64,000 bases of DNA from Macrostomum lignano. Lineage: Eukaryota. The translations under genes and the position numbers were made by a program. Shown one piece after another: positions 3,231 to 60,024 of this stretch (its first letter is position 1; every line of letters starts with the position of its first letter). The stretch is from assembly GCA_002269645.1 (NCBI GenBank), contig NIVC01002737.1, forward strand, positions 80,217 to 144,216, given 5' to 3'. Below the pieces are notes generated by a model. That model was given only the letters and a program-made list of their open reading frames with translations, did not search any database and was not told the DNA's origin.

Positions 3231-5662
3231 TACATCATGGTGAGCACTAACATTCGCGTCTTTGCGAGATATCAATTGATGCAGCCCTGAAACTTTTGAG
3301 CAATCATTGTCTCAGCAATAATCTCATGGTGCAGTAGGTCAGGGTGTGGGATATAGCTTGAAAAATGTTCACTTGGATACCACATTATGTATGAACAACT
3401 TGGCACACTTGTTGACCCCATCAGCTATGGCCTTGACCACGTGGCGTCCATAGATTAAAACTTGTTTCATTGACTTAAATCAAATGGCAATCAGCTGGTA
3501 GACCTAGCAGCCATTCATCATGCTCACATCTCCTTGCAATGTTTTTGGGGCTGTTCCTGGCTGCTGGCATATCTGTGTCCCTTACCAAGCACTTCATTAT
3601 AAACAATTGCTTGTCAAGCTTCCGAACAATAGTACTTTTGCTAACTTCCATTCCATGAGATTGTTAAAGATCATGTTGCATTTGACTCAGCATTAAAAGT
3701 AGATTTTCTTCCAACATTTGCAGCAGCCTGTTTGTGTGCATCTCTCCCAGTTATTCATATTGCAAGCCACCTCTGAGAAGAAAATCTTGGTGGCCAGTGG
3801 TTTCGTATCACCTTATTGAGTATACCATTTAAATTTTCATGTTTAGCCACTGAGAAATCGACAATAAAGTCTCTCCACACTTAAGAGCTTTCACAATGAG
3901 ACAGTACCTTTCATTCTTGACTTTTGCATATCAACTTTTCATGACTTTTCATCATTCTTGCATATTAATGGCTTTTAAAATAATTACACAAAATTAGTGC
4001 CCCTAGGATTAAATTGAATAGAATGAAACAGCATATTTGGCCATAGACATATCTCTAGTGACAGCAGAATGAATTAGAATTCTGTCTGGCAGATTAAATT
4101 GAATGATTCTAGAACCAAATTGACTGGGAAATACTATAATTTATATAAACATTTGTGTCAATGCTAGAGTAAGTTAGAGCTAGGAGATTTCAAACTCACT
4201 GCTAGCATAGCTTGTACATTCATATACTAGTGTATTTTGTCTAGTATACTTGGTGCACAATTGAAAATATTTTTCAGTAACTTCTAGTGTATACATTATA
4301 TGATCTTGACTATAGATGCACAAGTATATGTGCATATGTGTATTCCCTCTAGGAAAAATTTTATGAGGCAATGCTAAGTTAGTAGTTAGCAATTACTAAC
4401 TTTGCAGCAGCAGCTAACCAACAAGTAGAAAGTTTTGGTTTCATGTCTAAGCTGCTAAATAATAACTATTAGTTAATAGTAAGGTTGTGCCACCAAAACA
4501 TCTATGTGATAAGAATGTAGGCTCTCTCAAGGCAAGTAGGAAAATACTGAATATTAAGCAGCTTTTTGTGGCTTTGAATTAAAATGGCCTCCATTAAACA
4601 CAAGAAACTTTTCTGTCCCTAATGGGAGCTCACAAGTCAATGTTTGCAAGTTTTTCTGATGTTTCTAAGGCAAAGAGTAAGAAAAGAAAGGTGTGAGAGA
4701 AGATTAGATTTGCTATGGAGTCGAATGGACTGAGCAATTCAGTGTTTGCTCATGGGAAATCAGGTTTCTACTTCTCAGGGCATTGTATTCCAACTGTAGG
4801 CCAATACAATCTACTAGAAAATTAAATGTTTCTGGGTTCATTTAGAAGTATTGCTTAAAGTCATTACTAGCATTATAATTTATGTGGTCTTTGAACTCTC
4901 TTGGTCAACAATTTTCAACCAGGATATCAGCTTATTGAAGCTTGTCAAATAGTGGAATCTCCATTCTTAGCCACCTCTTGAGGATACTAAACTTTATCAG
5001 TTAAACTTGTTGTCCTTTTAGGCTTTAGCTGAACTGCTAAGGTCATGAAACTGCAAACTAGTGGTCTGCTAAAAACCTTTTGACCATAGACATTGCTCAG
5101 AAACCCCTTATCCAACTAATATGCTTATGAAGCCAAAAGTTAGTGTAGTAGACTGATAAAAATTAGAATGCAACTACTAGACTCAAGAAACCAAAGGATG
5201 ACTGCAAACTATATATAATTAAAATGTTTTGAGGCAAATTGATCCCTAATTTCTTCCTAGACAATGGCTATAAAATCTGATGGTTACACTATTATAATGC
5301 TAGAACTATTTTGTTTCCCTGAAAAATACAATTTAACAAAGTATTAATAATGGTTATACTTTAAATTTGTTTTGGAATTTCCAAAAAGTACTATATTACT
5401 CGTAATATTTTACCAATTACAAAAGAACAATTAACTTTTTATTGCTCCAAGCATGCATAAAGGATAATATATAAATACTCATTTCTTTGTTTAAAAAATA
5501 TTTGAGCTCCAAAAATAAGAAAAGCACTACTACTACTACTACCAGCACTACTGCTCTCATTTCATTCGGTCTCGCTTGGCAAGAGCAGCTGTCTAACCAG
5601 TCTGTGAAGCAGAAAAAAACAAAAGTCCAGCTAGCATATTTTCAATTGTACTTTATTACACA

Positions 5663-8600
5663 ATGGCCTGCGACCTGCTAATGCCATCATCGCAAGGCGG
5701 AGCCAACAATCCAGCCTTCTCGCCGCTGACCCTGTTCGAGTGCACCATCACCAACGCACAGATGCTCATCGACTCCATGGCCGACCGGGACCTGATGCAG
5801 GCCCTGAAGATCGCCGGCGGCCTCCACACCCACATTGTCGGCGTCATCGAGCCGCGCTACGATCGCGTCTGTCAGCGTAGCGACGAGCACGAAGCCTGCT
5901 GCCAGGCGGCTGCCGCGGCTGCAACATCAGCAACGCTGACTCCTTCCAAGTCAGCTGGCGCCGCCAACTCGGCCAGTTTCGGAGCCAATGGCAGCGGCGC
6001 CGATTTGAAATCTGCCGTAGCTGCCGCCGCCGCCGCGGCCGGCCTGAAGTCCGAGTCTACCGGCTCTGTGGCAGCTGGCGGCGTCAAGTCCGAGCTGCTG
6101 GACCCCGACGCGTTCCCCGAGGAAGACGAAGAGGACTGTCTGATCCTGGAGGAGGACTGCTCCTTCCCCGCCGCTGCTGCCGCAATGTCGCCGTCGGCCT
6201 CCAGCTCCGCCAGCCGAAAGCGCCACCGCCCGTTGTCGCCCTCGTCAAGTCTGCAGATGCCGGGCGGAGCCAGCGCGGGTTTTCCTGGCAGCGCCCAGCA
6301 ACTGGCCGAGTGCAAAAATGCGCTCAGGATGGCCTATAAAAATATTAAAGGCAACGGGCCGCACCTGTTTGACTTTGCGCTGTCGTGAGTTGCTCTGCAA
6401 TTCTTGCATCCCTTGTAGAGGGATTCGGTGGGGTATGCGCGGTTGAGGGATTCAGTGGGGTATGAGCGTGTGAGGGATTCAGTGGGGTATGAGCGTGTGA
6501 GGGATTCAGTGGGGTATGAGCGGGTGAGGGATTCAGTGGGGTATGAGCGTGTGAGGGATTCAGTGGGGTATGAGCGTGTGAGGGATTCAGTGGGGTATGA
6601 GCGTGTGAGGGATTCAGTGGGGTATGAGCGTGTGAGGGATTCAGTGGGGTATGAGCGGGTGAGGGATTCAGTGGGGTTGGGTATGAGCGGGTGAGGGATT
6701 CAGTGGCGTATAAGCGTGTGAGGGATTCAGTGGGGTATGAGCGTGTGAGGGATTCAGTGGGGTATGAGCGGGTGAGGGATTCAGTGGGGTATGAGCGTGT
6801 GAGGGATTCAGTGGGGTATGAGCGTGTGAGGGATTCAGTGGGGTATGAGCGTGTGAGGGATTCAGTGGGGTATGAGCGTGTGAGGGATTCAGTGGGGTAT
6901 GAGCGTGTGAGGGATTCAGTGGGGTATGAGCGGGTGAGGGATTCAGTGGGGTATGAGCGTGTGAGGGATTCAGTGGGGTATGAGCGTGTGAGGGATTCAG
7001 TGGGGTATGAGCGGGTGAGGGATTCAGTGGGGTATGAGCGTGTGAGGGATTCAGTGGGGTATGAGCGGGTGAGGGATTCAGTGGGGTATGAGCGTGTGAG
7101 GGATTCAGTGGGGTATGAGCGTGTGAGGGATTCAGTGGGGTATGAGCGGGTGAGGGATTCAGTGGGGTATGAGCGTGTGAGGGATTCAGTGGGGTATGAG
7201 CGGGTGAGGGATTCAGTGGGGTTGGGTATGAGCGGGTGAGGGATTCAGTGGCGTATAAGCGTGTGAGGGATTCAGTGGGGTATGAGCGTGTGAGGGATTC
7301 AGTGGGGTATGAGCGTGTGAGGGATTCAGTGGGGTATGAGCGGGTGAGGGATTCAGTGGGGTTGGGTATGAGCGGGTGAGGGATTCAGTGGCGTATAAGC
7401 GTGTGAGGGATTCAGTGGGGTATGAGCGTGTGAGGGATTCAGTGGGGTATGAGCGTGTGAGGGATTCAGTGGGGTATGAGCGTGTGAGGGATTCAGTGGG
7501 GTATGAGCGTGTGAGGGATTCAGTGGGGTATGAGCGTGTGAGGGATTCAGTGGGGTATGAGCGGGTGAGGGATTCAGTGGGGTATGAGCGGGTGAGGGAT
7601 TCAGTGGGGTATGAGCGGGTGAGGGATTCAGTGGGGTATGAGCGTGTGAGGGATTCAGTGGGGTATGAGCGTGTGAGGGATTCAGTGGGGTATGAGCGGG
7701 TGAGGGATTCAGTGGGGTTGGGTATGAGCGGGTGAGGGATTCAGTGGCGTATAAGCGTGTGAGGGATTCAGTGGGGTATGAGCGTGTGAGGGATTCAGTG
7801 GGGTATGAGCGTGTGAGGGATTCAGTGGGGTATGAGCGTGTGAGGGATTCAGTGGGGTATGAGCGGGTGAGGGATTCAGTTGGGTTGGGTATGAGCGGGT
7901 GAAGGATTCAGTGGCGTATAAGCGGGTGAGGGATTCAGTGGGGTTGGGTATGAGCGGGTGAAGGATTCAGTGGCGTATAAGCGGGTGAGGGATTCAGTGG
8001 GGTATGAGCGTGTGAGGGATTCAGTGGGGTATGAGCGTGTGAGGGATTCAGTGGGGTATGAGCGTGTGAGGGATTCAGTGGGGTATGAGCGGGTGAGGGA
8101 TTCAGTGGGGTTGGGTATGAGCGGGTGAGGGATTCAGTGGCGTATAAGCGTGTGAGGGATTCAGTGGGGTATGAGCGTGTGAGGGATTCAGTGGGGTATG
8201 AGCGTGTGAGGGATTCAGTGGGGTATGAGCGTGTGAGGGATTCAGTGGGGTATGAGCGGGTGAGGGATTCAGTGGGGTTGGGTATGAGCGGGTGAAGGAT
8301 TCAGTGGCGTATAAGCGGGTGAGGGATTCAGTGGGGTTGGGTATGAGCGGGTGAAGGATTCAGTGGCGTATAAGCGGGTGAGGGATTCAGTGGGGTATGA
8401 GCGGGTGAGGGATTCGGTGGGGTATGAGCGGCACAGTGAGGGATCCATTGGGGTCTGAGCAGCACAATGAGGGATTCAGTGGGATATGAGCAGCACAGTG
8501 AAGGATTCAGTGGGGTATGAGCAGCACAATGAGGGATTCAGTGGGGTATGAGCAACACAGTGAGGGATTCAGGGGTCTGAGCAGCACAGTGAGGGATTCA

Positions 8601-11600
8601 GTGGGGTATGAGCAACACAGTGAGGGATTCAGGGGTCTGAGCAGCACAGTGAGGGATTCAGTGGGGTATGAGCAACACAGTGAGGGATTCAGGGGTATGA
8701 GCAGCACAGTGAGGGATTCAGTGGGGTATGAGCAGCACAGTGAGGAATTCAGTGGGGTATGAGCAGCACAGTGAGGGATTCAGTGGGGTATGAGCAGCAC
8801 AGTGAGGGATTCAGTGGGGTATGAGCAGCACAGTGAGGGATTCAGTGGGGTATGAGCAGCACAGTGAGGGATTCAGTGGGGTATGAGCAGCACAGTGAGG
8901 GATTCAGTGGAGTATGAGCAGCACAGTGAGGGATTCAGTGGGGTATGAGCAGCACAGTGAGGGATTCAGTGGGGTATGAGCAGCACAGTGAGGGATTCAG
9001 TGGAGTATGAGCAGCACAGTGAGGGATTCAGTGGGGTGGTGAGGCAGTGCAAGAACCCAACCAATCGCATTACATTTCATTACAATTTCACCAACCAATC
9101 GCAACGCCGCCGCAGCTTCCACGACCCGTCCAATCAGAGAGTGTCCGAGCAGATTATCGCTGCGGCCCGCCAGCAGCTGAGCCACCTGCGCCTGCCTAAC
9201 GATGTCTGGTGGAGTGAGTTGGTTATTTAATAATTTAAACAAATGCATAAGTGACTACTCGCAACCAGTTAAAGTAATAGCATTAGCAAATGTATTAAGT
9301 GAATATTGATGTCGGCCCTCTCCTTGCATTTGGTGACTTCGCACCGTGATCCAGTTTGATTGCCAGCTACAATAAGAGTTTTCATATCTTACCTGAGTAT
9401 GGCTAGTAGCTCGTTCGTTTCCCATGGGACGGCAGCGCAACTGTCCCGTCATTAATTGATTCCGCCTCTATGAATTCATAATTAACTAATTATCTATGCT
9501 CTTCTTAACTGTTAGCAGTACAGTATGCATTTCAGTTTGTTGATTTTGCTTCCCACTATCTGAGGTGCAGGTTTTATTGGTTATTTAAACCGACTGCAGG
9601 GTCGCGTGCTGATTATTGATACAAGCTGTGCAATTAGTTGTACTTTTATTGCTGATCAGCTGCGTGCTGCCGTTCAACTGAAACTTTGTTTAGGCCAAGC
9701 CGGCAACCTGTGTAAGCGAATCAAAATCGAGCTGAACAATAACAAGCGGCGCAATCGGCAGTTTCGCTGCAGGCAGAAGGTTGTTCTCCAACTGATTATT
9801 CTATTGGCTACCTAGCTAGCGAATCCCTACCAGCTGCAATGCTGAGCAGCCAGCCTCCCACATCCCCTAATGAGCCAGCCTCCCACATCCTTAATGAGCC
9901 AGTCTACCTCACCCCTAATGAGCAGCCATCCTCCCACATCCCTAATGAACCAGTCTCCCACATCCCCTAATGAGCCAGTCTCCCTCACCCCCTAATAAGC
10001 AGCCAGCCTACCATATCCCCTAATGAGCCAGCCTCCCACATCCCTTAATGAGCAGCCAGCCTCCAACACCCCATAATGAGCAGCCAGCCTCCCACACTCC
10101 CTAATGATCCAGCCTCTCACATCCCTTAATGAGCAGCCAGCCTCCCACACTCCCTAATGATCCAGCCTCCCACACCCCCTAATGAGCAGCCAGCCTCCCA
10201 CACCCCTAATGATCCAGCCTCCCACACCCCCTAATGAGCAGCCAGCCTCCCACACCCCCTAATGATCCAGCCTCCCACATCCCTTAATGAGCAGCCAGCC
10301 TCCCACACTCCCTAATGAGCCAGCCTCCCACACCCCCTAATGAGCAGCCAGCCTCCCACACCCCCTAATGATCCAGCCTCCCACACCCCCTAATGAGCAG
10401 CCAGCCTCCCACACCCCCTAATGATCCAGCCTCCCACACCCCCTAATGAGCAGCCAGCCTCCCACACCCCCTAATGATCCAGCCTCCCACATCCCTTAAT
10501 GAGCAGCCAGCCTCCCACACTCCCTAATGAGCCAGCCTCCCACACCCCCTAATGAGCAGCCAGCCTCCCACACCCCCTAATGATCCAGCCTCCCACACCC
10601 CCTAATGAGCAGCCAGCCTCCCACACCCCCTAATGAGCAGCCAGCCTCCCACACCCCCTAATGAGCAGCCAGCCTCCCACACCCCCTAATGAGCAGCCAG
10701 CCTCCCACACCCCCTAATGAGCAGCCAGCCTCCCACACCCCTAATGAGCAGCCAGCCTCCCACACCCCTAATGAGCAGTCAGCCTCCCACACCCCCTAAT
10801 GAGCAGCTAGCCTCCCACACTCCATAATGAGCCAGCCTCCCACACCCCCTAATGAGCAGCCAGCCTCCCACATCCCCTAATGAGCAGCCATTGAGTCTTG
10901 TCTTCTTAGCTTAGTTTATTGTGGCAGTGATAACAATCGGGGAAAGTTCTCAATGCCCTTATGAAGTGAAGCGGATCAAACTGCGGTGAAGCGGTGAAGT
11001 CTCGGGCAGTTGCTTGCTCAGCTCCGACAGTCATACCGCAGAGCCAATCAAATGCGTTTTTTAGAATCGCTCAACAGCAGCGGCGTGTTCGGTCAAGCGA
11101 GGCACAATTACTTAGCCAAATTTCGAATGCTTAAAATTAAACGGAAAAGCAACGTAGGTTTATTTGAGACTGTGTGCTCACTGAGCTGCGTGTGTCTGCG
11201 AACTCTGCTAGGTCATGGTTATAACTAGGGGGACAGGCAAATAAACTGACTTGCTGTGCCAGCGCTGTTAACCTGTAACCAAGTGTTAACCCGTAAACAT
11301 AGAAAGGCATGCCACTCGCCTTGCAGACAATAAAGCTGCTCGAGCATTTTATGCCGAGGAGAAAAATCGCGTGCTCACTCGAGTCCGAATGCGCCGCGTT
11401 GCCGGGCAGAAGTCTGTAAGGAGTCGCATCTGCCTTCCCTTCCCATCTTGTTTTTCTGAGTTGCAGTTTTGTCGCTTCTAATAGTTGCTTGATCAGCTGT
11501 TGCCACGGGCGTCTGGAGTTCCCGCTGGACTGGACTGGGGCGAGCATGGGGGGGGGGGGTTAGTCAAATTGGGTATATATTCAAAAGGTATTCATGACGA

Positions 11601-14600
11601 CACTCAAAGATCCCAGTGTCCAGTCCAGATAAGCTCCAGTGGTCCCTGGCCCATTCGCCCATTGTTCATCATGTTAATCGTTGTTATACGCTTTTATAAA
11701 AATTCGTAGCGATTCGGTGGCAAAGAGTTGGCCCATATCGACTAGAGTGCAGCTAGGCAGTATCTATGCAATAATAGCACACTGGATTGGACCGCTTACT
11801 GACCTTATTGCAGAGCACTGCTTCCCCAGCTTGTACGATGAGTTAACCAAATATGACAAGCATAGGGAGCGAATGAAGCACAGAATGCGAGCTCGCAGGC
11901 TTATGAACAGCGTACGTATTATAAATAACTATAACTATTTGGCAGTGCAAGCCTGCTTGTTTCATAAATCACTGCCTAATCGCGCATCAAACGCAAGGTC
12001 CGCGGCTAACACTTCCCATGGTTTCTTAGCGCAATCTTAATCCTCTTTGGGGTTGGGGATTTCTTTTTAAACTGTTTCAGGCCTGTCCAGTGCTGCGTTT
12101 GCTGATCTGCAGCACAGCATATTGGAGAAGCGGCACTATACTAAGCATTCTGTGCGGAAATTCCGCAGCAAACTCAAGGTAAACACTGCCCTGGTCCGGA
12201 TTGGGTCTTTGATATTAGCTTTTGCTTCTGCAGTCCTGTGTGTTCACCGTGTGTTCCGTGTTTGTTCTGGGCTATTAAAAGAGCAAGCTTTAATAGCCAA
12301 GATCTGGTCTGACAGTCGAATCCCACTGTCAAGTCCCAATCCCATAGTCAGAAGTCCCAATCCCGCAGTCAGAAGTCCCAATCCCATAGTCAGAAGTCCC
12401 AATCCCGCAGTCAGAAGTCCCAATCCCATAGTCAGAAGTCCCAATCCCGCAGTCAGAAGTCCCAATCCCATAGTCAGAAGTCCTAATCCCGCAGTCAGAA
12501 GTCCCAATCCCATAGTCAGAAGTCCCAATCCCGCAGTCAGAAGTCCCAATCCCATAGTCAGAAGTCCCAATCCCGCAGTCAGAAGTCCCAATCCCGCAGT
12601 CAGAAGTCCCAATCCCGCAGTCAGAAGTCCCAATCCCATAGTCAGAAGTCCCAATCCCGCAGTCAGAAGTCCCAATCCCATAGTCAGAAGTCCCAAATCC
12701 AATGTCAAGTCCCAATCCCATAGTCAGAAGTCCGAATCCCGCAGTCAGAAGTCCCAATCCCACAGTCAAAAGTCCCAATCTCACAGTGGGAAGTCACAAT
12801 CTCACAGTCAGAAGTCACAATCTCACAGTCGTAAGTCACAATCCCACTGTCAGAAGTCCCAATCTCACAATCAGAAGTCCCAATCCCACAGTCAAATCCC
12901 AAGCCCATAGTCAGAAGTCACAATCCCATAGTCAGAAGTCACAATCCCATAGTCAGAAGTCACAATCCCACAGTCAGAAGTCACAATCACACAGTCGGAA
13001 ATCAATCCCGCAGTCAGAAGTCCCAATCTCACAGTCAGAAGTCACAATCCCATAGTCAGAAGTCACAATCCCATAGTCAGAAGTCACAATCCCACAGTCA
13101 GAAGTCACAATCACGCAGTCGGAAATCACAATCCCGCAGTCAGAAGTCCCAATCACACAGTCGGAAATCACAATCCCGCAGTCAGAAGTCCCAATCACAC
13201 AGTCGGAAATCACAATCCCGCAGTCAGAAGTCCCAATCACACAGTCGGAAATCACAATCCCGCAGTCAGAAGTCCCAATCACACAGTCGGAAATCACAAT
13301 CCCGCAGTCAGAAGTCCCAATCGCACAGTCGGAAATCACAATCCCGCAGTCAGAAGTCCCAATCACACAGTCGGAAATCACAATCCCGCAGTCAGAAGTC
13401 CCAATCACACAGTCGGAAATCACAATCCCGCAGTCAGAAGTCCCAATCGCACAGTCGGAAATCACAATCCCGCAGTCAAAAGTCCTAGCCCTACTAATTT
13501 CAAGTTAATCTCTACTGACTAATCCCTATTAAATTTATTCTGATAAATTAATAGGTTGCATGCCTGTTGGAGGTGCATAGCAACCCGGTACGATGGTAAC
13601 AAATTTCACGCAGCATCAAAAGCAAGGCCCGGCCGCCCCAGTTTAGCCAGCTCCGTTAGAGATTGAATCCAGTGTTTCAGGACCGCCCGGCAGTAACACC
13701 TGCGCCGTGCGCTGCATTGCAGGCTGCGCTGAGGAATTGTGGCTGCTATTGAAGAAAGCTGTGGCGCACAAGCGCGAAAGAGACGTCTTCTATCAGCGCA
13801 AGGGGCGCCTGAAAAATAAAGTAAAACCATGCAATCTATGCTCATTTGCTTACTTTTTCCACCGGGTTTTATCCTTTGTTGTAAATTAACCAATTGGGTC
13901 GGTAAGACGCATATAGGCTTTTAGGAAGTAGGTGCTAATCAGGGACTTTTCTGCTCTCATTTATACGACTGACATGATGCCTCATCTTTAACATTGATTG
14001 GGCTGCGTGATATTACACCTCGCTGCCTCCCGCTCTCCGTCTCCCCTTTCCAACCTCCATCTCCCCCTCCCAGCCTCCCTCTCTACCCCCTCCCAGCCTC
14101 TCTACCCCCTCCCAACCTCTCTCTCTACCCCCTCCCAGCCTCTCTCTCTACCCCCTCCCAGCCTCCCTCTCTACCCCCTCCCAGCCTCCCTCTATCTCCC
14201 GCTCCCAACCTCCATCTCTACCCCCCTCCGAACCTCCCTCTCCATCTCCCTCTCCCGACCTACCTCTCCATCTCCCTCTCCGTGTCCCACACGCCACATA
14301 CAGCTCCTGTTTTCTGACCCATCAGAAACTGGCCAGACGGCAGAAGAGCTTCGAACTGCTAGCAACCAGTTTATCCACCGACAAGTTCGACAAGTACCGC
14401 ATCATTTTGTCCCGGGACTACACTTCGTCTGACGAGGAAGCCGATGTTGGCAGCGGCGGTGCCAGCGCGAGCGGCGATGACGGAGGAGGCGGCGGAGGCG
14501 TCCTTCGAGTCCGCGAGCTGCCCTGGGAATCTGCGGAGCTGCGCGAGATGAAGCAGCAGCTGGACTCTATCTATCTGGAGAATTGCGCAACTCAGAAGCA

Positions 14601-14703
14601 GGCGCAGCAGTTGCGCAGCACAGTGCGCGACTCCGGCTGCGTCAGCGGCAGGACTCCACCTGCCAACTGCCCGTCCTGGGCGCTGTCTAATGAGTACCGC
14701 TAA
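5663..14703 (+). CDS. Gene A: uncharacterized basic, probably nuclear protein with a mutually exclusive exon cluster (427-431 aa)
   Basis: Exon 5663-6384 (phase 2, GTGAGT), exon 9116-9213 (cag|CTTC, ends A|GTGAGT, phase 1), one variant exon from 9694-13820, last exon 14326-14703 (cag|AAACTG, KLARRQKSFELL..YTSSDEE..LRVRELPWES..LD..PSWAL). Phases join; every constitutive exon aligns with gene B. C-terminal motif recalls C14orf93-like proteins (from memory, not searched). Confidence 0.85.
6421..9035. repeat. Intronic minisatellite, 27-bp unit changing to a 31-bp unit
   Basis: GAGGGATTCAGTGGGGTATGAGCGTGT to about 8420, then GAGGGATTCAGTGGGGTATGAGCAGCACAGT; fills intron 1 of gene A. Confidence 0.97.
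9312..9367 (+). promoter_or_regulatory. Putative docking site for the gene A exon cluster
   Basis: CCTTGCATTTGGTG (9322-9335) and GACTTCGCACCGTGATCCAGTTTGATTGCC (9335-9364) are reverse-complementary to segments upstream of five variant exons. Confidence 0.7.
9694..9779 (+). CDS. Gene A variant exon A1 (86 nt, weak donor)
   Basis: ttag|GC..AAG|gttgtt; (S)QAGNLCKRIKIELNNNKRRNRQFRCRQK; partly aligns with A6 (A..L....K....KR....F..R); no convincing selector. Confidence 0.5.
9845..10890. repeat. Minisatellite of about 25-29 bp inside the gene A exon cluster
   Basis: CCTAATGAGCAGCCAGCCTCCCACACCC variants. Confidence 0.95.
11065..11153 (+). CDS. Gene A variant exon A2 (89 nt)
   Basis: ttttttag|AA..AAC|gtaggt; (K)SLNSSGVFGQARHNYLAKFRMLKIKRKSN; selector at 10975-11001. 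Confidence 0.75.
11327..11415 (+). CDS. Gene A variant exon A3 (89 nt)
   Basis: ttgcag|AC..TCT|gtaagg; (N)NKAARAFYAEEKNRVLTRVRMRRVAGQKS; selector GGCAAATAAACTG at 11236-11248. Confidence 0.75.
11814..11911 (+). CDS. Gene A variant exon A4 (98 nt)
   Basis: ttgcag|AG..AGC|gtacgt; (K)HCFPSLYDELTKYDKHRERMKHRMRARRLMNS; weaker selector at 11768-11787. Confidence 0.75.
12081..12178 (+). CDS. Gene A variant exon A5 (98 nt)
   Basis: tttcag|GC..AAG|gtaaac; (S)LSSAAFADLQHSILEKRHYTKHSVRKFRSKLK; selector CATCAAACGCAAGG at 11985-11998. Confidence 0.8.
12330..13480. repeat. 21-bp minisatellite inside the gene A exon cluster
   Basis: CAGAAGTCCCAATCCCATAGT and variants. Confidence 0.96.
13723..13820 (+). 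CDS. Gene A variant exon A6 (98 nt)
   Basis: ttgcag|GC..AAA|gtaaaa; (S)CAEELWLLLKKAVAHKRERDVFYQRKGRLKNK; selector CATCAAAAGCAAGG at 13614-13627. Confidence 0.8.
14030..14280. repeat. CT-rich degenerate repeat before the last exon of gene A
   Basis: CTCTCTACCCCCTCCCAGCCTC units. Confidence 0.85.
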
Positions 14704-14854
14704 TGCTTGCCAGACTGATTAGGTGGCGAGCTGGTTGACTATTCGCGAACTATAGGGTTACTCGCGCCGTTTACCCAACTAACTGTGACGAATTTAGGGC
14801 CAACCATTCTTTACTGCAATTGTTTCTGACACCCAGTTTTGTTCGTGTTCTCTT

Positions 14855-15265
14855 CCATCCATGGGATACCCGCCACACCTGGTCTCTCCCATCCATGGGA
14901 TACCGCCACACCTGGTCTCTCCCATCCATGGGATACCGCCACACCTGGTCTCTCCCATCCATGGGGTACCCGGCACACCTGGTCTCTCCCATCCATGGGG
15001 TACCCGGCACACCTGGTCTCTCCCATCCATGGGGAACCCGGCACACCTGGTCACTCCCATCCATGGGGAACCCGGCACACCTGGTCTCTCACATCCATGG
15101 GGAACCCGGCACACCTGGTCTCTCCCATCCATGGGGAACCCGGCACACCTGGTCTCTCCCATCCATGGGGAACCCGGCACACCTGGTCTCTCCCATCCAT
15201 GGGGTACCCGGCACACCTGGTCTCTCCCATCCATTGGGAACCCGGCACACCTGGTCTCTCCCATC
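14855..15265. repeat. Minisatellite of about 34 bp downstream of gene A
   Basis: CATCCATGGGGAACCCGGCACACCTGGTCTCTCC, about 12 copies. Confidence 0.95.
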
Positions 15266-15854
15266 GAGTTCGTCATACTGTCAATGTTGACTTTTCGAAT
15301 CAAAATTTGAATAGCTCTCCAATGCTGGCACAGAGGCTCCATGCGATTTCAATACCTGGGGAAAAGTATTTGCTGCATTTAAGCTTCAATATTTGCACTG
15401 CGAGTAGTTGCGCAATGTGTCTCTTATCTATAATATTTTACTTGTTGCTGCTATCCCAGTCAGTAAATATTATTGCAATTAGCGAACTTTCATAAACCCC
15501 ACATTGTCACATGTCTCTGTTCACTTGTTAATCTGTAATAAGTTTGCCTGTATTCTGTTTTCATGTGTTTATTATTTTTTGCTGTTGTTTAACTGCCCCC
15601 AGTCATTTCCGCAGCTTTGCTTTTGCGTTAACACACTGTCTCGTTCTGTACATGCTATAAAATACGATAATTACATAACAATATGATAATAATAAATTTA
15701 TTTGCTAAAGAATTTTTCATTCTTTTTCTGTTGTTGCCGATTCATTATCGGAAAAATGCAGTTGTATTACTGTTCTGAAGCTTTGCTCATGTAGTGAAAT
15801 AGACCAGGCTTTATTATTATAGCATAGTGTAGTGCATAGTGCATGTTTAGTTCC

Positions 15855-16280
15855 TGGGATTCCCCTCCAGCACCCATCCCCCTGACTGCCTACCCCACAG
15901 CGTACATTGAATGTCTGGGATTCCCCTCCAGCACCCACCCCTCACTGCTTACCCCACTGCGTACATTGAGGGCCTGAGATTCCCCTCCAGCACCCACCCC
16001 TCACTGCCTACCCCACTGCGTACATTGAGTGTCTGAGATCCCCCTCAAGCACCCACCCCTCACTGCCTACCCCACTGCGTACATTGAATGTCTGGAATTC
16101 CTCTCCAGCACCCACCCCTCACTGCCTACCCCACTGCGTACATTGAATGTCTGGAATTCCTCTCCAGCACCCACCCCTCACTGCCTACCCCACTGCGTAC
16201 ATTGAATGTCTGGAATTCCTCTCCAGCACCCACCCCTCACTGCCTAACCCACTGCGTACATTAAATGTCTGGGATTCCCT
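15855..16280. repeat. 59-bp minisatellite upstream of gene B
   Basis: About 7 copies of CATTGAATGTCTGGAATTCCTCTCCAGCACCCACCCCTCACTGCCTACCCCACTGCGTA. Confidence 0.95.
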
Positions 16281-16341
16281 TCTAGCGCAATGAGTCAAGT
16301 CTGCAATTACGCTTTTGCATGTAGCCTTTCACCACCAAACA

Positions 16342-19300
16342 ATGACGGACATTCTGCCTAGCCACTCCATCACCGGGGGCGTTTTTTCACCCCTGACCCT
16401 GTTCGAGTCCACCATCACCAACGCGCAGATGCTGGTGGAGTCCATGGCCGAGCGGGAGCTGTTCTCCGCCCTGCGCATCATCGGCGGCCTGCACAGCCAC
16501 GTTGTCCAGGTCATGGAGCCGCGCTACGGCCGCCTGTGTGAGCGCAGCGACCACCTCGCCGAGCTGGAGGCCGCCGGCCTGGATCAAAGCCACGGCTCCG
16601 CTGCCGAGGCTGCCGAAGCCACTTCATCCTCGTCGGCTGCTGCCGCTTCTAGCAGACGCTTCGCTAAGGAGGAGAAACTGCTAGGCGACACCGACACGGA
16701 GCAGCAGTGCACCTCAGTGCTGCGCTCCGCCCTTGGCACCATCAAGGTATTTCCTATTCACCGCGTTGTGATGTCGGCGCCTTTCCTATTATATTTGATG
16801 TCGCGGACTTTCCCATCTCCTCTGATGTCGCCGCCTTTCCCATCTCCTCTGATGTCGCCGCCTTTCCCATCTCCTCTGATGTCGCCGACTTTCCCATCTC
16901 CTCTGATGTCGCCGCCTTTCCCATCTCCTCTGATGTCGCCGACTTTCCCATCTCCTCTGATGTCGCCGACTTTCCCCACTCCTTTGATGTCGCCGCCTTT
17001 CCCCACTCCTTTGATGTCGCCGCCTTTCCCGTCTCTTTGATGTCGCCGTCATTCTCTTCTCTTCTGGTGCTCAACAGATGGAGAACTTTGACGCGGCCGG
17101 CGCTTCCGCCCTGCCATCCGCCGCTAACGCAAACTTCGGCGAACAGCTGGAGCCGCCGGAGATCTTGGAAGAGGACGCCGATGATGAAGACGAGGATGAC
17201 GATTGCGTCATCACCGACTACTTCGACGACAGCAGCTTTGGCGCTAGCGGCATCGGCGCCTTCGGTGGCGTCGGCCCGTCGCCCGCCAAAATGCCGCGAC
17301 TCGGCGGGGTCGGCGGCGGCGCAGGCGACAGCTCGATGCCGGCCGAGTGCAAGACCATCATGCGCCGGGCTTACAAAGCTCTCAAGGGCAACGGGCCGCA
17401 TCTGTTTGACTTCAGCCTGCCGTGAGTCTCCTTAGCTGGCACGCCGGTTACCAGTCCCGGCCTCAGTCTGGAAACGCCTCTAGAAATCTTCGACCTTACA
17501 TCAGCCAAAATGCAAACCCTGGTTAGGCTACCCTGAACAAACCCTGAGCCACCCCTGAACAAACCCTGAGCCACCCCTGAACTCAAGTCTGAGCCATTCC
17601 CTGAACTCAACCCTGAGCCACCCCTTGAACTCAACCCTGAGCCACCCCCTGAACTTAACCCTGAGCCACCCCCTGAGCTCAATCCTGAGCCACCCCCTGA
17701 ACTCAACTCTGAGCCACCCCCTGAACTCAACTCTGAGCCACCCCCTGAACTCAACTCTGAGCCACCCCCTGATCTCAACCCTGAGCCAGCCCCTGAACTC
17801 AACCCTGAGCCACCCCTTGAACTCAACCCTGAGCCAGCCCTGATCTCTGTGGACTCAAGAGCGCCGCCTCCCCCACCGCCGGCCCCACAGCTTCTCTTCG
17901 GAGCACAACCAGCGAGTTGCCACCCGCGTCACCGCCAAAGCCAAGGAGATGGCCCAGGGCAAGGGCTGGCCGAGGACATTTGGCTGAGTGAGAATCAGTG
18001 CCGCTTTTTGTGCATTTAGATATAAAGTTTGATAAGTTGATAAATGATGTGTAGAATACAACTCTTAATTAAGATTACACTGCGTATGAAGTAGTTAATA
18101 GAATAGATTAATCGTAAAATCTTATCTTAGTTATATTCTATTAATACTACTCGCACAGACTAGCCAAGTAGTATCTATAGGCTGCGCTAATGTGCTAATT
18201 TTACCTGCCCTCAAGTCTGGAAACGTCGCAAGTAATTTGGGTACAAGAAATATTTAATAACTAATTTTAATCTCCTTTCAACTTGGGCTGCTTCTAATAG
18301 GTTCATGTCTGACTATTTGAGACACAATCAGAGACTTAATTATGCATTAATTATCTAATTAATTATTTGCATTATTTCTATTGCCGAACTGCCTACAGTT
18401 AGCAGGTGGTAAAGCGATGTAATGCTACTGAGACTGTTGCCTATTCGACGTTTCTTATTGGCCATTTAGAATGAGTTTTGAATAAAGCTGAACTGCTCAA
18501 CTCACACTTAGAACTGCCCTACGGCTCAAGGCTAGTCTACCTGTACCTGGATTTTCGGCAAAAGATGAGGTTTAAGCATCGATGCGTTGTAAGCTTTGCT
18601 GGTCATCTCTGTTTCTATCGGTTTTTTGTGTCACACCAGCCTCCACTGTCCTGCTTGCGATGTTCGCCCAGACTCGCGTCTTTATAACAGGCTTTGCTCA
18701 AAACAGTTTTGCCAATATGTTTCTGGCCTCCAATTTGCCCAGGGCTGCCCAAAGAGTCCAGAGTAAATCGGATTCACTGCACCTATGGAGCCCGTCTGCG
18801 CGCCAAGCACAGGCAGATTGTGAGTTCCCTCCCCCTGTGCCCTCCCCTGTACCTTGATGAGCCGCCTCTCCCCCTGTGCCTTTGATGAGCCGCCTCTCCC
18901 CTTGTGCCTTTGATAAGCCGCCTCCCTCCCCCTGTGCCTTTGATAAGCCGCCTCCCTCCCCCTGAGCCTTTGATGAGCCGCCTCTCCCCCATGTGCCTTT
19001 GATCAGCCGCCTCTGCCCCTGTGCCTTTGATGAGCGGCCTCCCTTCCCCTGAGCCTTTGATAAGCCGCCTCTCCCCTGAGCCTTTGATGAGCCGCCTCTC
19101 CCCTTGTGCCTTTGATAAGCCGCCTCCCTCCCCTGAGCCTTTGATAAGCCGCCTCTCCCCTTGTGCCTTTGATAAGCCGCCTCCCTCCCCTGAGCCTTTG
19201 ATGAGCCGCCTCTCCCCCATGTGCCTTTGATCAGCCGCCTCTGCCCCTGTGCCTTTGATGAGCGGCCTCCCTTCCCCTGAGCCTTTGATAAGCCGCCTCT

Positions 19301-22239
19301 CCCCTGAGCCTTTGATGAGCCGCCTCTCCCCTTGTGCCTTTGATAAGCCGCCTCCCTCCCCCTGTGCCTTTGATAAGCCGCCCCCCTCCCCTGAGCCTTT
19401 GATGAGCCGCCTCTCCCCATGTGCCTTTGATCAGCCGCCTCTGCCCCTGTGCCTTTGATGAGCGGCCTCCCTTCCCCTGAGCCTTTGATAAGCCGCCTCT
19501 CCCCTGAGCCTTTGATGAGCCGCCTCTCCCCTTGTGCCTTTGATAAGCCGCCTCTCCCCCCTGTGCCTTTGATAAGCCGCCTCCCTCCCCCTGAGCCTTT
19601 GATGAGCCGCCTCTCCCCCATGTGCCTTTGATCAGCCGCCTCTGCCCCTGTGCCTTTGATGAGCGGCCTCCCTTCCCCTGAGCCTTTGATAAGCCGCCTC
19701 TCCCCTGAGCCTTTGATGAGCCGCCTCTCCCCTTGTGCCTTTGATAAGCCGCCTCCCTCCCCTGAGCCTTTGATAAGCCGCCTCTCCCCTTGTGCCTTTG
19801 ATAAGCCGCCTCCCTCCCCCTGAGCCTTTGATAAGCCGCCTCTCCCCTTGTGCCTTTGATGAGCCGCCTCTCCCCTTGTGCCTTTGATAAGCCGCCTCCC
19901 TCCCCTGAGCCTTTGATAAGCCGCCTCTCCCCTTGTGCCTTTGATCAGCCGCCTCTCCCCCTGTGCCTTTGATAAGCCGCCTCCCTCCCCCCTGAGCCTT
20001 TGATGTCCGCCTGTCTTTGCGCTGGGTTAAGCAAGTCAGTGATAAATAAGTCTACAATTTTACAATCAATTCGACGTTTCCCGTCTGGACAGTTGGCTAA
20101 AAACTCTCGCCTATAAGTGCACCCAGAGTCTGAGGCGATTTTCCCGCAGGACTGCCGAAAGTCGGCCGCCTGTCCGAGATTTTCTTTGTTTTCAGAAGTC
20201 AAATCCGAAACAAGCTGCGACTCGTTGTACGCAATTGTCACAGTTCCGCACTTTCTCTGTTGTGTTGGGAATTTTTCTGTCAAAAATTTTCTACGATGCA
20301 TATCGGCGTTTCCTGACTAAAGTTGAGCAGATTTGGCTTTGCGTAGCAAATTTCTACCAAAGTCGCTATCGTCTACTCACGCCAGTCAGTAGTGTATTGA
20401 GGAGTGCTCGGCTCACTTTTTACATCTATTTTTAGATCTGCCTTCCAGCGGCAAAATCAGGAAGATATTCACCGATTTTAGGCAGAAGATGCGCGCTAGG
20501 CTGGTGCTTGGCGTGCGTGCCCGATTTTCTCTGTTTAGGTTTTTATTTAATTTTTTGACGTTTCCCGGCTGCCTGTAAGCTCACTGCTGTGTGAGGCTTG
20601 TGCTTGCTAACACTTGACCTGACTGCCCCGCTGTTGCAGGGCTGCCACACACCGGCCGGCCGACCGCCATATTCAACGATTTTAGAAAGAAAATGCGCAC
20701 CAGGTTTCGGATGGATGTTAGTGATAATTGCTTTAGGTGTTTCTATGGGGCTCTGCGAATTCCGCTTCAGTGCTGAGACGTTTCCTGACAATGGCCGGGT
20801 GCTGCAATTGTGCGAACCCCCCCGTGTCCGTCACGCCACCGACTGCCGCTTGCAGATCTGCCGCCCAAGGCCCGCCTGCTCGCCATTTTTGGCGACTTTA
20901 AAAAGAAAAGGCGATTCAAGTCCCGCTCTGATGTCAGTGCAGCTGGGTGGCTTTTCGCCTCATCTGTGTTGTTTGTTTTTCCCCATTTTTGATTGCTCTG
21001 CCTTGGCGGGGTAGGCAGGGTAGCTAGATTGGTAGACAGACAAATTGATTGATTGACAGACAGGCCGGCAGGCAAACAAACACTAAGATAGGCAAACAGA
21101 CAGACACAGATACGCTAGCAGACCAACGTAATTGCGCGGTGCACCGTGGGGGGGTGTGAGGCTGTACATTGCTGGCACTGTGGGGCCCCGGGCCAGCAAC
21201 CTTTACCCGCTGTAACTTATCGCTCAGCCTGTTACAATGCCAGACGTTTCCTGACAACTCAGACTGTGAATTGTACAGCACACAGAATTGCCAGCAAACA
21301 GTTACCCATCGCGCGCGTTGCAGAGCTGCCCATGAACAGCCGATTGATCTGCATATTCGCCGACTTTAGAAAGAAGATGCGCAACAGATTTCGTTCAGAT
21401 GTTGGTCCGGGTTCAAAACTCGATTTCAGAGCTTTCAGGCTGCGATATGAAAATATTTGTTACATGCTATTGGAACTACTGTACTGACTGCTGATCAGTA
21501 GTCAATGCCATCATGATATGAAAAATGATTCCTCTCTGATTTGCTTCTGTTTAAACTGTACTGAGCTGTCGAAAAGCCACTGCATGACCTGAGCTATGAC
21601 TGAAAAGCCACTGCATGACCTGATCTATGACTGAAAAGCCACTGCATGACCTGATCTATGACTGAAAAGCCACTGCATGACCTGAGCTATGACTGAACAG
21701 CCGCTGTATGAGATCTGAGCTATGACTGAAAAGCCACCACTCTATGACCTGAGCTATGACTGAAAAGCCACTGTATGAAGGCTATGACTGAAATGAATCT
21801 CAAAGCAGCCAGCTCTCGCAGTCTTGCCTCGCTTCCCCCGAACTTGCAGAAGCTGAACCGCCGTCAGAAAAGTTTCGAACTCGTGGCCACCAGCCTGACC
21901 TCCGACGAGCTGGAGAAGTTCCGCGTGATCCTCACCAGGGAGTACACCAGCTCGGATGAGGAGTGCGGCTCCGGCGGCGCCGACCAGCTGCGGGTCCGCG
22001 AGCTGTCCTGGGAGTCCGACGAGGTGAAGCGGCTGAAGCGGCAGCTGGACCAGGTTTACGCGGACAACTGCGCCACCACCAAGCAGAAGCAGCAGCTGGC
22101 CAGGTGCATCCGCGACCCCGTCCGATCGCGGTCGCAGCGGCCGCCGCCCGAGGCTGCGCCAAGCTGGGCTTTGAAGGCGCCGCTGCAGAAGAACCGGCCG
22201 GGAGACGGCGCTCCGCCGCCCGCCTCCGGCACAGCCTGA
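16342..22239 (+). CDS. Gene B: paralog of gene A with seven 77-nt mutually exclusive exons (437 aa if one missing base in exon 3 is restored)
   Basis: Exons 16342-16746, 17078-17421, 17891-17987, one 77-nt variant exon, 21850-22239. Shares FSPLTLFE.TITNAQML..SMA.R.L..AL.I.GGLH, ECK..R.AYK..KGNGPHLFDF.L, F....NQRV and KL.RRQKSFEL.ATSL..YTSSDEE..LRVREL.WES with gene A. Exon 3 is 97 nt vs 98 nt in gene A. Confidence 0.8.
16790..17045. repeat. 27-bp minisatellite in gene B intron 1
   Basis: TGATGTCGCCGCCTTTCCCATCTCCTC. Confidence 0.95.
17530..17840. repeat. 24-bp minisatellite in gene B intron 2
   Basis: CTGAACTCAACCCTGAGCCACCCC. Confidence 0.95.
18212..18232 (+). promoter_or_regulatory. Putative docking site for the gene B exon cluster
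   Basis: CAAGTCTGGAAACGTCGCAAG, between the constitutive donor (17988) and the first variant exon; reverse complement of the GACGTTTCC(TGAC) motif seen before all seven variant exons. Confidence 0.85.
18512..18588 (+). CDS. Gene B variant exon B1 (77 nt)
   Basis: cttag|AA..GTT|gtaagc; (K)LPYGSRLVYLYLDFRQKMRFKHRCV; selector CGACGTTTC at 18446-18454. Confidence 0.85.
18743..18819 (+). CDS. Gene B variant exon B2 (77 nt)
   Basis: cccag|GG..ATT|gtgagt; (R)LPKESRVNRIHCTYGARLRAKHRQI; selector CTTGCGATGTTCGCCCAGACT from 18654. Confidence 0.85.
18825..20000. repeat. Minisatellite of about 28-30 bp inside the gene B exon cluster
   Basis: GCCTTTGATAAGCCGCCTCTCCCC(TT)GT/GA variants. Confidence 0.96.
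20150..20226 (+). CDS. Gene B variant exon B3 (77 nt)
   Basis: cgcag|GA..GTT|gtacgc; (R)LPKVGRLSEIFFVFRSQIRNKLRLV; selector CGACGTTTCC at 20072-20081. Confidence 0.85.
20436..20512 (+). CDS. Gene B variant exon B4 (77 nt)
   Basis: ttttag|AT..GGC|gtgcgt; (N)LPSSGKIRKIFTDFRQKMRARLVLG; selector CGGCGTTTCCTGACT at 20304-20318. Confidence 0.85.
20640..20716 (+). CDS. Gene B variant exon B5 (77 nt)
   Basis: ttgcag|GG..GAT|gttagt; (R)LPHTGRPTAIFNDFRKKMRTRFRMD; selector GACGTTTCCCGGCT at 20557-20570. Confidence 0.85.
20856..20932 (+). CDS. Gene B variant exon B6 (77 nt)
   Basis: ttgcag|AT..GAT|gtcagt; (N)LPPKARLLAIFGDFKKKRRFKSRSD; selector GACGTTTCCTGAC at 20777-20789. Confidence 0.85.
21324..21400 (+). 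CDS. Gene B variant exon B7 (77 nt)
   Basis: ttgcag|AG..GAT|gttggt; (K)LPMNSRLICIFADFRKKMRNRFRSD; selector GACGTTTCCTGAC at 21243-21255. Confidence 0.85.
21575..21795. repeat. Short tandem repeat (about 31 bp) before the last exon of gene B
   Basis: ATGACCTGAGCTATGACTGAAAAGCCACTGC variants. Confidence 0.9.
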
Positions 22240-22264
22240 CCGCCTTCGCGAGTTACTCCTGCTT

Positions 22265-22630
22265 GACCTGACTTCATCTGCCCTTCTCCGTTATCCGCTC
22301 CCATACGCCCTTACCCTCCGTTATTCGCCCCTTCATCCGCCCTTACCCTCCTTTATTCAACCCCATTCGCCCTTATTTTCCGTTATCCGCCACCTCATCC
22401 GCCCTTACCCTCCGTTATCCGCCCCCTCATCCGCCCCCTCATCCGCCCTTACCCTCTGTTATTCGCCCCTTCATCCGCCCTTACCCTCCTTTATTCGCCC
22501 TTACCCTCCGTTATTCGCCCTTACCCTCCGTTATCCGCCCTTACTCTCCGTTATTTGCCCCTCCAGCCGCCCTTTCTCTTTATCCGCCCCCTTTCTTGCC
22601 CTTGCTCTCACAGTCTCTGTTATCCGCCCC
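22265..22630. repeat. Degenerate C/T-rich repeat 3' of gene B
   Basis: CCGCCCTTACCCTCCGTTAT units. Confidence 0.85.
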
Positions 22631-23169
22631 GCCTCCGCTCAGTCGCAGTTCGCAAGCGCGGACCAGTATTCGAACCCGGGGCAACGAGTTATTGAACTGT
22701 TATTAAAAGCCGCTCTGTGCCCTCCTGTTTGCGCGTCTGCAATCCCCTGTGCCGCTGTTCAATGTACATTGACTTGTGTTTTATTGAATATTTTCTGTTC
22801 GTGGCAGACTTTGCATTTTTATTTTTGTAAACTATTTGAGTATCAATATATTTGCTTTGTCAATCACCCATCAGTTAGCATGGACTGTTTTATTTTTCAT
22901 TAATATGCACCCGCGTTTAATCACAATGTCCAGGCTCTGTTGAACTGCAATTGAATGTCTTTAACCAGGCAAATACAGAACCGCCAACGCATTAACAACT
23001 GCTTATTCAATTATCAATTGCTGTTGCGAAATGATCGAATTCTTATCGATAAATATCTTGATGAGCTGGCTGCTTTTTTTTCAATTGCAAAAGACATTTT
23101 TGCAATTGCATTATAAAAAATATCAGGTTAGTTTGTGGACTCAGATATCATTGGGAATCACCAAAATGA

Positions 23170-29264: not shown

Positions 29265-29678
29265 CTATTTAAGGACGATTTCATAGACTGAGTTCACCCC
29301 CTCGCCGCCGCAGATCTCCTCGGCGTAGCCGCGGCAGTTCTGGTCACAGCTGGACTCGTCCACAGAGCCGTACCTGCCGTAGGAATCGCCGCAGAAGCAG
29401 CTGCCGCCGCCCTGCAGACCAAAGTACCGGTTGCCCGAGCCGCGGCACAGGAAGTCGCACAACTTCCGGTTGACCCGCCCGGTGCCCAGGCCGTCACCGC
29501 CAGCCAGCCGTTCGAGATCCGGGCTGCCCTCTTTGTCCTGGTAGCAGCCGATGTAGCGCGGCTTCAGCGCCTCGGGGCTCGCTGACAATTTTTGGGGAGT
29601 CAGGGGTCAGGGACAGCCTCCGGGTTTGGAGCTTCAGTTCAGATGCCCAGATTCGGACAGACAGGCAGAAAGGCAGGC

Positions 29679-59688: not shown

Positions 59689-60024
59689 GAGGCAAATTTT
59701 GAAAAAATCTGATTATGGAAATATAAAATTTTAAACGCCTATTTGCGACTCAGTGAACAACATGAAAATCAAAGCTTACTATTTGGTGTGGAGTGGGACT
59801 GAAAATATATTTTGCTAGGGGGAGAATTGGGAAGCGAATTCTTCTGCCCTCTCATTGGTCGGTTGTGAATATTCCGCAACCAATGCCAATGAATAATTCT
59901 TGAGAGTTAGCTTGACCGTTAGATAGTTGTAGTTGATTTATAGTTGATTGCTTGATTGCATTTTTACTAAAGCCATAATTTACTTTCACTTAATTTATCA
60001 TTCGATTTTGGCCACATCATTGAT

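Follow-up and report, generated by a model that had tools for sequence, protein, structure and literature searches.

A tandem array of six alternative exons in a Macrostomum lignano gene, with a candidate docking site and putative selectors for single-exon choice

The stretch of DNA analyzed here (the window) comprises 64,000 nucleotides (nt) of Macrostomum lignano contig NIVC01002737.1 (positions 80,217 to 144,216, forward strand; positions below are those of the window unless another locus is named). It contains a gene, here called gene A, and a paralogue downstream of it, gene B, at about 16.3 to 22.2 kilobases (kb). Gene A starts with a first coding exon, followed by a constitutive exon, an array of six candidate alternative exons (v1 to v6), and the last coding exon (Table 1), and minisatellites fill much of its introns. 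Two M. lignano protein models, P0005 (BOX15_Mlig028241g1) and P0039 (BOX15_Mlig000635g2), match the gene almost perfectly. The array is a real cluster that contributes a single alternative exon to each transcript, and a combination of pairing statistics and paralogue comparisons points to a docking site in intron 1, which follows the constitutive exon; this site may steer the choice among the six.

All six variant exons are bordered by AG and GT, and their lengths (86, 89, 89, 98, 98, and 98 nt) are each of the form 3n+2. The constitutive exon ends one nucleotide into a codon, and v1 to v6 are all open in the frame set by that single leftover nucleotide. Since every variant contributes 3n+2 nt to the one nucleotide left over from upstream, transcripts with a single variant stay in frame. 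With zero, two, or three variants, the reading frame is broken, and with zero or two the last exon runs into a stop within a few dozen codons; a full protein is obtained from one variant (or four) only. The positions, lengths, and phase of these exons had been proposed in an earlier reading made without database searches (the sequence-only reading) and held up without change. The protein models agree with single use. P0039, a full-length product of 431 amino acids, joins 9213 to 13723 and 13820 to 14326, with v6 as its only variant; P0040 carries only v5, after the constitutive exon; and P0005 carries only v1 and then reads through the weak GTTGTT 5' splice site into the intron. While P0040 is a UniRef-only model of unstated origin, P0039 and P0005 come from the Mlig_3_7 annotation, which was built from RNA sequencing (PMC5730564). 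Single inclusion is, in other words, on record for v1, v5, and v6. As a separate observation, v6 also has another 3' splice site in frame, located at 13681, 42 nt before the acceptor of P0039. It is this earlier site whose context (TGTTTCAG/G) is conserved with that of the v5 3' splice site, and it may serve as an alternative acceptor that adds 14 residues.

The protein belongs to a multigene family so far seen only in M. lignano: among 1.84 billion representative proteins we found 30 relatives, and all of those whose source was checked are from this species. Pfam gave no domain match for the family, Foldseek gave no structural match in the PDB, and an Rfam search of window positions 5000 to 23000 returned nothing. 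In an alignment of 10 paralogues, conserved N-terminal (FSPLTLFE.T..NA.ML) and C-terminal (KLSRRQKSFE...LRVR.L.WES) domains flank a variable basic segment of about 30 residues that is encoded by the alternative exon. The AlphaFold model places this segment within a long helix (residues 269 to 321; predicted local distance difference test score, approximately 88 to 97), and the six exons are predicted to encode part of a long basic alpha-helix. Given that the alternative exon alters a basic stretch of that helix, the array probably diversifies an interaction surface. After correction for composition, the peptides of v2 to v5 (A2 to A5) show links among themselves and with variants from other paralogues (P values of 0.002 to 0.025; within the array, 0.025 for A2-A5 and 0.005 for A3-A4), and those of v1 and v6 (A1 and A6) show no significant resemblance to other variants. 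The peptide similarity described for all six in the sequence-only reading is thus only partial.

For comparison, paralogous loci were fetched from the Mlig_3_7 assembly. Two of these (L001 and L002) hold near-identical copies of gene A, with 98.5 to 99.4% identity, and a third (L003, NIVC01000521, positions 4991 to 20504) holds a diverged second A-B gene pair, A'-B'. Both the duplicate pair and the near-identical copies fit the known redundancy of this assembly. Paralogue A'' (P0054, locus L007) has about 50% protein identity to gene A. The array size varies widely across the family, from roughly six 3n+2 variants in paralogue D (L004, 3300 to 6403) and two in paralogue E (L005, 4195 to 6883) to a single variant with short introns, and without an array, in paralogue F (L006, 3554 to 4018). 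A profile of the B and B' variant peptides, run against all frames of the gene A array, gave no significant match, and a kinship of A-type and B-type variants could not be demonstrated in that way.

We propose that long-range RNA pairings, in competition with one another, would steer exon choice in gene A. Approximately 95 to 150 nt into intron 1, a docking site would pair with one of several selectors, each located some 45 to 117 nt upstream of a variant's 3' splice site, and this pairing would loop out the intervening exons and bring the chosen 3' splice site near the constitutive 5' splice site. The docking site would consist of two halves, a conserved one (alpha), serving v5 and v6 and probably v1 and v4, and a gene-specific one (beta), which may serve v2 and v3.

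The pairings themselves (counted with G-U pairs) are as follows. Partners of alpha are found upstream of v1, v4, v5, and v6 and partners of beta upstream of v2 and v3, the best ones all lying 117 to 45 nt upstream of the 3' splice site; the docking region is free of local structure. Within alpha, 9322-9335 pairs at 13 of 14 positions with both 11985-11998 and 13614-13627 (-15.4 kcal/mol each), and within beta, 9352-9364 pairs at 12 of 13 positions with 11236-11248 (-12.9 kcal/mol). Upstream of v2, the segment 10975-11001 forms stems of ATCAAACTG with CAGTTTGAT, GAAGTC with GACTTC, and CGGTG with CACCG (-25.5 kcal/mol in RNAduplex). In the v6 selector region, 13594-13606 can additionally pair with beta, in docking-site order, and the whole docking region pairs with the sequence upstream of v6 at -41.7 kcal/mol (P = 0.04). 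A selector candidate is found upstream of every variant, clear in the case of v5 and v6 and with the P values listed in Table 1 for v1 to v4. The pairings that had been listed from the sequence alone (the two 13-of-14 matches, the 12-of-13 match, and the two-stem pairing of 10975-11001) were all reproduced, and the longest one does span 4.3 kb and cross the minisatellites at 9843-10890 and 12319-13485. Two points required revision. First, 11768-11787, offered earlier as a weak partner for v4, does pair weakly, but 11713-11740 and the poly-G stretch at 11546-11574 are better candidates. Second, the docking region of about 55 nt exists as an element, its alpha 15-mer being conserved (see below), but it is made up of two adjacent sub-sites rather than overlapping sub-segments: the users of alpha overlap one another, as do the users of beta, while alpha and beta adjoin without overlap.

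Taken together, the gene A pairings are beyond chance. When compared with dinucleotide shuffles, the site of 55 nt reaches a summed z-score of -4.3 (-6.5 for the 27-nt docking site of gene B), and after composition correction no other 55-nt window of intron 1 scores better. Moreover, the region 9300-9365 outperforms all 1,885 control regions, both by its worst-served variant and by its summed score; these controls came from non-coding DNA elsewhere in the window (11.5 kb in total), with targets 120 to 40 nt upstream of v2 to v6. Two other measures were less informative. A raw scan of intron 1 by 25-nt duplex energy mostly tracked G+C content, did not single out the site, and was replaced by shuffle z-scores. 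An RNAduplex comparison of the 67-nt region 9300-9366 with each 81-nt upstream region gave z-scores of only -0.3 to -2.0 and was not significant for v1 to v4, since long, sloppy duplexes in the shuffled sequences score equally well.

We regard the comparative evidence, which is drawn from sequence, as decisive for the docking reading. Although the intron after the constitutive exon has otherwise diverged between gene A and A'', a 15-mer, CTTGCATTTGGTGAC, is identical in the two (9323-9337 in gene A) and lies at +109 from the 5' splice site in both. No longer stretch is shared exactly by these introns; in 300 shuffles, the longest match averaged 9.3 nt, with a maximum of 12, and none (0/300) reached 15. 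Neither the rest of the window nor the other fetched loci contain another copy of the 15-mer. The A'' selectors differ in sequence from those of gene A, yet they complement the same core: TCCCCAAGTGCA is found 75 to 64 nt upstream of A''2 and GTCACCGAAATGC 126 to 114 nt upstream of A''3. Selection bias does not enter the following tests, which involve A''. Its docking site, picked by homology alone, has a mean z-score of -1.72 with the variants of A'' itself and -0.81 with the gene A variants; the docking site of gene A, scored on the A'' variants, gives -1.29. The v5 and v6 selectors of gene A are themselves a conserved island, matching each other at 17 of 20 positions ungapped and 22 of 24 with one gap (P = 0.003), although the v5 and v6 exons are identical at only 35 of 98 positions. 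The near-identical gene A copies show no change in the docking site or the core selectors.

Docking and selector sequences of their own were found in the sister genes. In gene B (region 17988 to 21400), a very clean putative docking site (Table 1) finds complementary sequence before each of the six downstream variants, with the consensus ACGTTTCCTGAC; its selectors, of the form GACGTTTCC..GAC, lie approximately 65 to 131 nt upstream of the variants. The core of this site, GGAAACGTC, which pairs with GACGTTTCC in both B and B', recurs in B' (position 15887 of L003). In gene D, GCATTTGCAGAGG pairs with CCTCTGCAAA, and GCATTTGCAGAGGTTT pairs with CCTCTGC(A/G)AA upstream of D2 to D5; in gene E, AACGTTGCAGAGGT pairs at 14 of 14 positions with GCCTCTGCAACGTT upstream of E1; and in gene A', TCTCTCTCCTTG pairs with CAAGGAGAGAGA upstream of the second variant. 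Genes B, B', D, and E present clean systems with different sequences at positions equivalent to those in gene A. An alignment of intron 1 between A and A' left the sequence that they have in common, CTCTCCTTG, unaligned, and homology of the A' docking site is only a suggestion. When each docking site was scored against the variants of each gene, the resulting matrix was strongest on its diagonal, where gene A was weakest (mean z-score, -1.5); the docking windows of B, D, E, and A' were picked from their own pairings, which makes these diagonal values partly circular. We speculate that a Dscam-type system is present in at least six paralogues, with docking sites and selectors rewritten in match, and that the docking site of gene A, split into two sub-sites, represents an intermediate state; we consider this possible, although doubtful.

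Table 1. Features of genes A and B in the window
Feature	Position	Strand	Remarks
Gene A, first coding exon	5663..6384	+	ATG at 5663; 5' splice site GTGAGT at 6385; fits N-terminus of P0039 and P0005
Gene A, constitutive exon before the array	9116..9213	+	5' splice site GTGAGT at 9214; in P0005, P0039, P0040, and P0041
Docking site alpha (putative)	9308..9340	+	Core CTTGCATTTGGTGAC at 9323-9337
Docking site beta (putative)	9341..9366	+	CCAGTTTGATTGCC; specific to gene A
v1 selector (putative, weak)	9588..9614	+	106-80 nt before 3' splice site; pairs with alpha, -24.9 kcal/mol, P = 0.05; z = -2.7
Variant exon v1	9694..9779	+	86 nt; weak 5' splice site GTTGTT; in P0005; resembles A''1 (also 86 nt)
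v2 selector (putative)	10970..11001	+	95-64 nt upstream; pairs with beta and GACTTC, -25.5 kcal/mol, P = 0.02
Variant exon v2	11065..11153	+	89 nt; peptide like A'2 (P = 0.002) and B5 (P = 0.005)
v3 selector (putative)	11235..11260	+	92-67 nt upstream; pairs with beta, -24.3 kcal/mol, P = 0.03
Variant exon v3	11327..11415	+	89 nt; peptide like A4 (P = 0.005)
v4 selector (best-placed candidate)	11713..11740	+	101-74 nt upstream; pairs with alpha, P = 0.13
Variant exon v4	11814..11911	+	98 nt; peptide like A'2 (P = 0.006)
v5 selector (putative)	11984..12012	+	97-69 nt upstream; core 11985-11998, CATCAAACGCAAGG
Variant exon v5	12081..12178	+	98 nt; directly after constitutive exon in P0040
v6 selector region (putative)	13593..13636	+	13614-13627 and 13631-13635 pair with alpha
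Variant exon v6	13723..13820	+	98 nt; in full-length P0039
Gene A, last coding exon	14326..14703	+	TAA stop at 14701-14703
Minisatellites in gene A introns	6418-9037; 9843-10890; 12319-13485		Fill much of the introns
Gene B docking site (putative)	18214-18234		AGTCTGGAAACGTCGCAAGTA; very clean
Gene B variants	18512, 18743, 20150, 20436, 20640, 20856, 21324		Seven, 77 nt each; all begin xLP...

Several observations weigh against the docking reading, and some of them would be expected if only part of the array were at work. Variants v2, v3, and v4 are in no public M. lignano gene model that we found (few such models exist), conservation in A'' does not extend to the beta half, and the pairings of beta are marginal (P values of about 0.02 to 0.03). 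The v4 selector is ambiguous, given the alternatives at 11546-11574 and 11768-11787. The selectors do not all compete for the same docking nucleotides, either; with alpha and beta not overlapping, competition for a site would not be enough to prevent two variants, such as v2 and v5, from being chosen together. It could thus be argued that gene A has a system of three exons, v1, v5, and v6, the counterparts of the A'' variants, operating on alpha, while v2 to v4 are unused or decaying duplicates and their beta pairings are due to chance. The public models contain just these three, only three variants of A'' are convincing (86, 98, and 98 nt), and alpha does not pair with the regions upstream of v2 and v3 (z-scores of +0.4 and -0.3). 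However, v2 to v4 are flanked by good splice sites and keep the correct frame open, and their peptides resemble those of other variants (A2-A'2, P = 0.002; A4-A'2, P = 0.006; A2-B5, P = 0.005). Between gene copies, moreover, the variant exons have 2 changes in 558 nt, compared with about 1.2% in the introns, i.e., roughly a third as many substitutions (a comparison of low power), and the beta partners of v2 and v3 are located at the usual place, 95 to 67 nt upstream. With so few public models, absence from them is weak evidence, and we consider a three-exon system unlikely.

Other observations bear on the pairing as such. Taken singly, the pairings of gene A are each within chance, so that the expectation in the sequence-only reading of energies better than those of shuffled controls holds for the pairings jointly and not one by one. 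Stems of equal strength occur elsewhere in intron 1, where the regions 9474-9540 and 9612-9653 also score fairly well. A motif search independent of docking, which did recover ACGTTTCCTGAC in gene B, found no common selector motif among the upstream introns of gene A, and the near-identical copies of the gene, at about 1.2% divergence, are too similar for a covariation test. One could accordingly do without RNA docking in gene A altogether: splice-site competition and protein regulators would make the choice, the reading frame and nonsense-mediated decay would enforce the one-variant rule, and the conserved 15-mer and the v5/v6 island would be protein-binding intronic splicing elements whose complementarity is incidental. 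The frame rule alone does explain productive mRNAs with one variant, and by our estimate a 13-of-14 match, G-U pairs included, between an island of about 24 nt and a 480-nt intron is not rare. Nevertheless, we think this explanation quite improbable, as the region-level control test was exceeded, as the A'' selectors differ from those of gene A while still complementing the same core, and as five sister genes (B, B', D, E, and A') have differing docking sequences with matching selectors at the same positions, which a common protein-binding motif leaves unexplained.

On balance, we judge it rather probable that gene A carries a single-variant array in which the choice is steered by docking-selector pairing, with alpha and beta in the roles given above. 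For the individual exons, sequence comparison makes such control probable for v5 and v6, via the conserved alpha core, and plausible for v1 and v4; the assignment of v2 and v3 to beta is tentative. That pairing drives exon choice, that beta takes part in it, and that variants downstream of the chosen one are skipped are steps that we infer from the arrangement as a whole.

A few further elements were observed in the gene A introns. The sequence GCATTTCAGTTTGTTGATTTTGC at 9527-9549 resembles the alpha and beta docking cores, as if a second copy of each had been fused, and has GCATTT.CAG in common with the gene D docking site; the region around it ranks second in the control test, and the element may be a decoy or an additional docking site. 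At 9409-9433, intron 1 contains TCGTTCGTTTCCCATGGGACGG, which resembles the gene B selector type (compare TTCGACGTTTCCCGTCTGGAC of B3); no matching GGAAACG docking site is present in gene A, and this element may be a relic of an older code. A partly palindromic element, TTGCT(T)GATCAGCTG, is found upstream of v1, v2, and v4 (9648-9662, 11008-11023, and 11483-11498) and is partly conserved in A'' (ATGCTGATTAACT). Finally, the poly-G tract at 11546-11561, in the intron between v3 and v4, differs in length among the three near-identical gene copies and pairs promiscuously with pyrimidine-rich stretches via G-U pairs.

Elsewhere in the window, an open reading frame (ORF) with an RNase H domain (57608-58357, minus strand; Pfam PF00075, E = 8e-9) is probably part of a retroelement. 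The two long ORFs adjoining it (59948-61906, plus strand), without a Pfam match, are possibly a DNA-transposon remnant. An ORF with a WSC domain (29265-29588, minus strand; Pfam PF01822, E = 6e-15) is adjoined by a long GACA/GTCT-type microsatellite at 29.6 to 30.6 kb.

Since transgenesis is possible in M. lignano (PMC5730564), mutations of the docking site and selectors would be directly testable. If the docking reading is correct, the mechanism would be more ancient, or would evolve more readily, than has been assumed; the paralogues would then provide natural compensatory changes, as evidence for pairing, as well as a natural series for the evolution of an RNA code after gene duplication. 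No docking-selector system has been reported for Macrostomum or other flatworms in the searchable literature. Arrays of mutually exclusive exons controlled by RNA structure are best documented in arthropods, the mammalian cases cited below (e.g., ATE1) being small, and we know of no multi-exon docking-selector system previously described outside arthropods.

Among the systems available for comparison, the closest relatives of the gene A array are those of B, B', D, and E, which belong to the same family and have their alternative exon at the same position in the protein, with docking sites approximately 70 to 250 nt into the same intron and selectors about 65 to 130 nt upstream. Each of these genes has a single compact docking core and selectors with a clear consensus, whereas the docking site of gene A is bipartite, differs in sequence, and scores much more weakly (mean z-score, -1.5). 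Exon clusters controlled by RNA structure are also known from insects (14-3-3xi, Mhc, srp, MRP1, and RIC-3; PMC4691838) and mammals (ATE1 and DNM1; PMC7797038 and PMC11802352). In these, too, competing intronic RNA pairings pick one of several tandem exons, but most of the clusters have two or three exons, and some have downstream docking or act bidirectionally. Selectors are thought to arise by duplication of the intron along with the exon (PMC6071210), and the layout of gene A fits such an origin.

The best match to the layout of gene A is the exon 6 cluster of Drosophila Dscam1, where a docking site follows the constitutive exon and selectors lie upstream of each variant (Graveley 2005, as summarized in PMC11802352). 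In both, each mRNA takes one exon from a tandem set, the intron that directly follows the constitutive exon contains a conserved docking site, and complementary selectors lie upstream of the variants (docking site and selectors being predicted ones in gene A). The docking site is long, different selectors would use different parts of it, and the pairing would extend over kilobases. The differences are that Dscam1 exon 6 has 48 variants and gene A six, that gene A is without a common selector consensus, and that its docking site consists of two adjacent, non-overlapping halves for different subsets of exons. In gene A, in addition, the 3n+2 length of the variants means that the frame also enforces single inclusion. 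In Drosophila, the general repressor hrp36 silences unselected variants; no equivalent is known for gene A, a flatworm gene encoding an unrelated protein, whose pairing is predicted from sequence. By analogy, then, what we describe would be the known Dscam1-type mechanism in an unexpected phylum.

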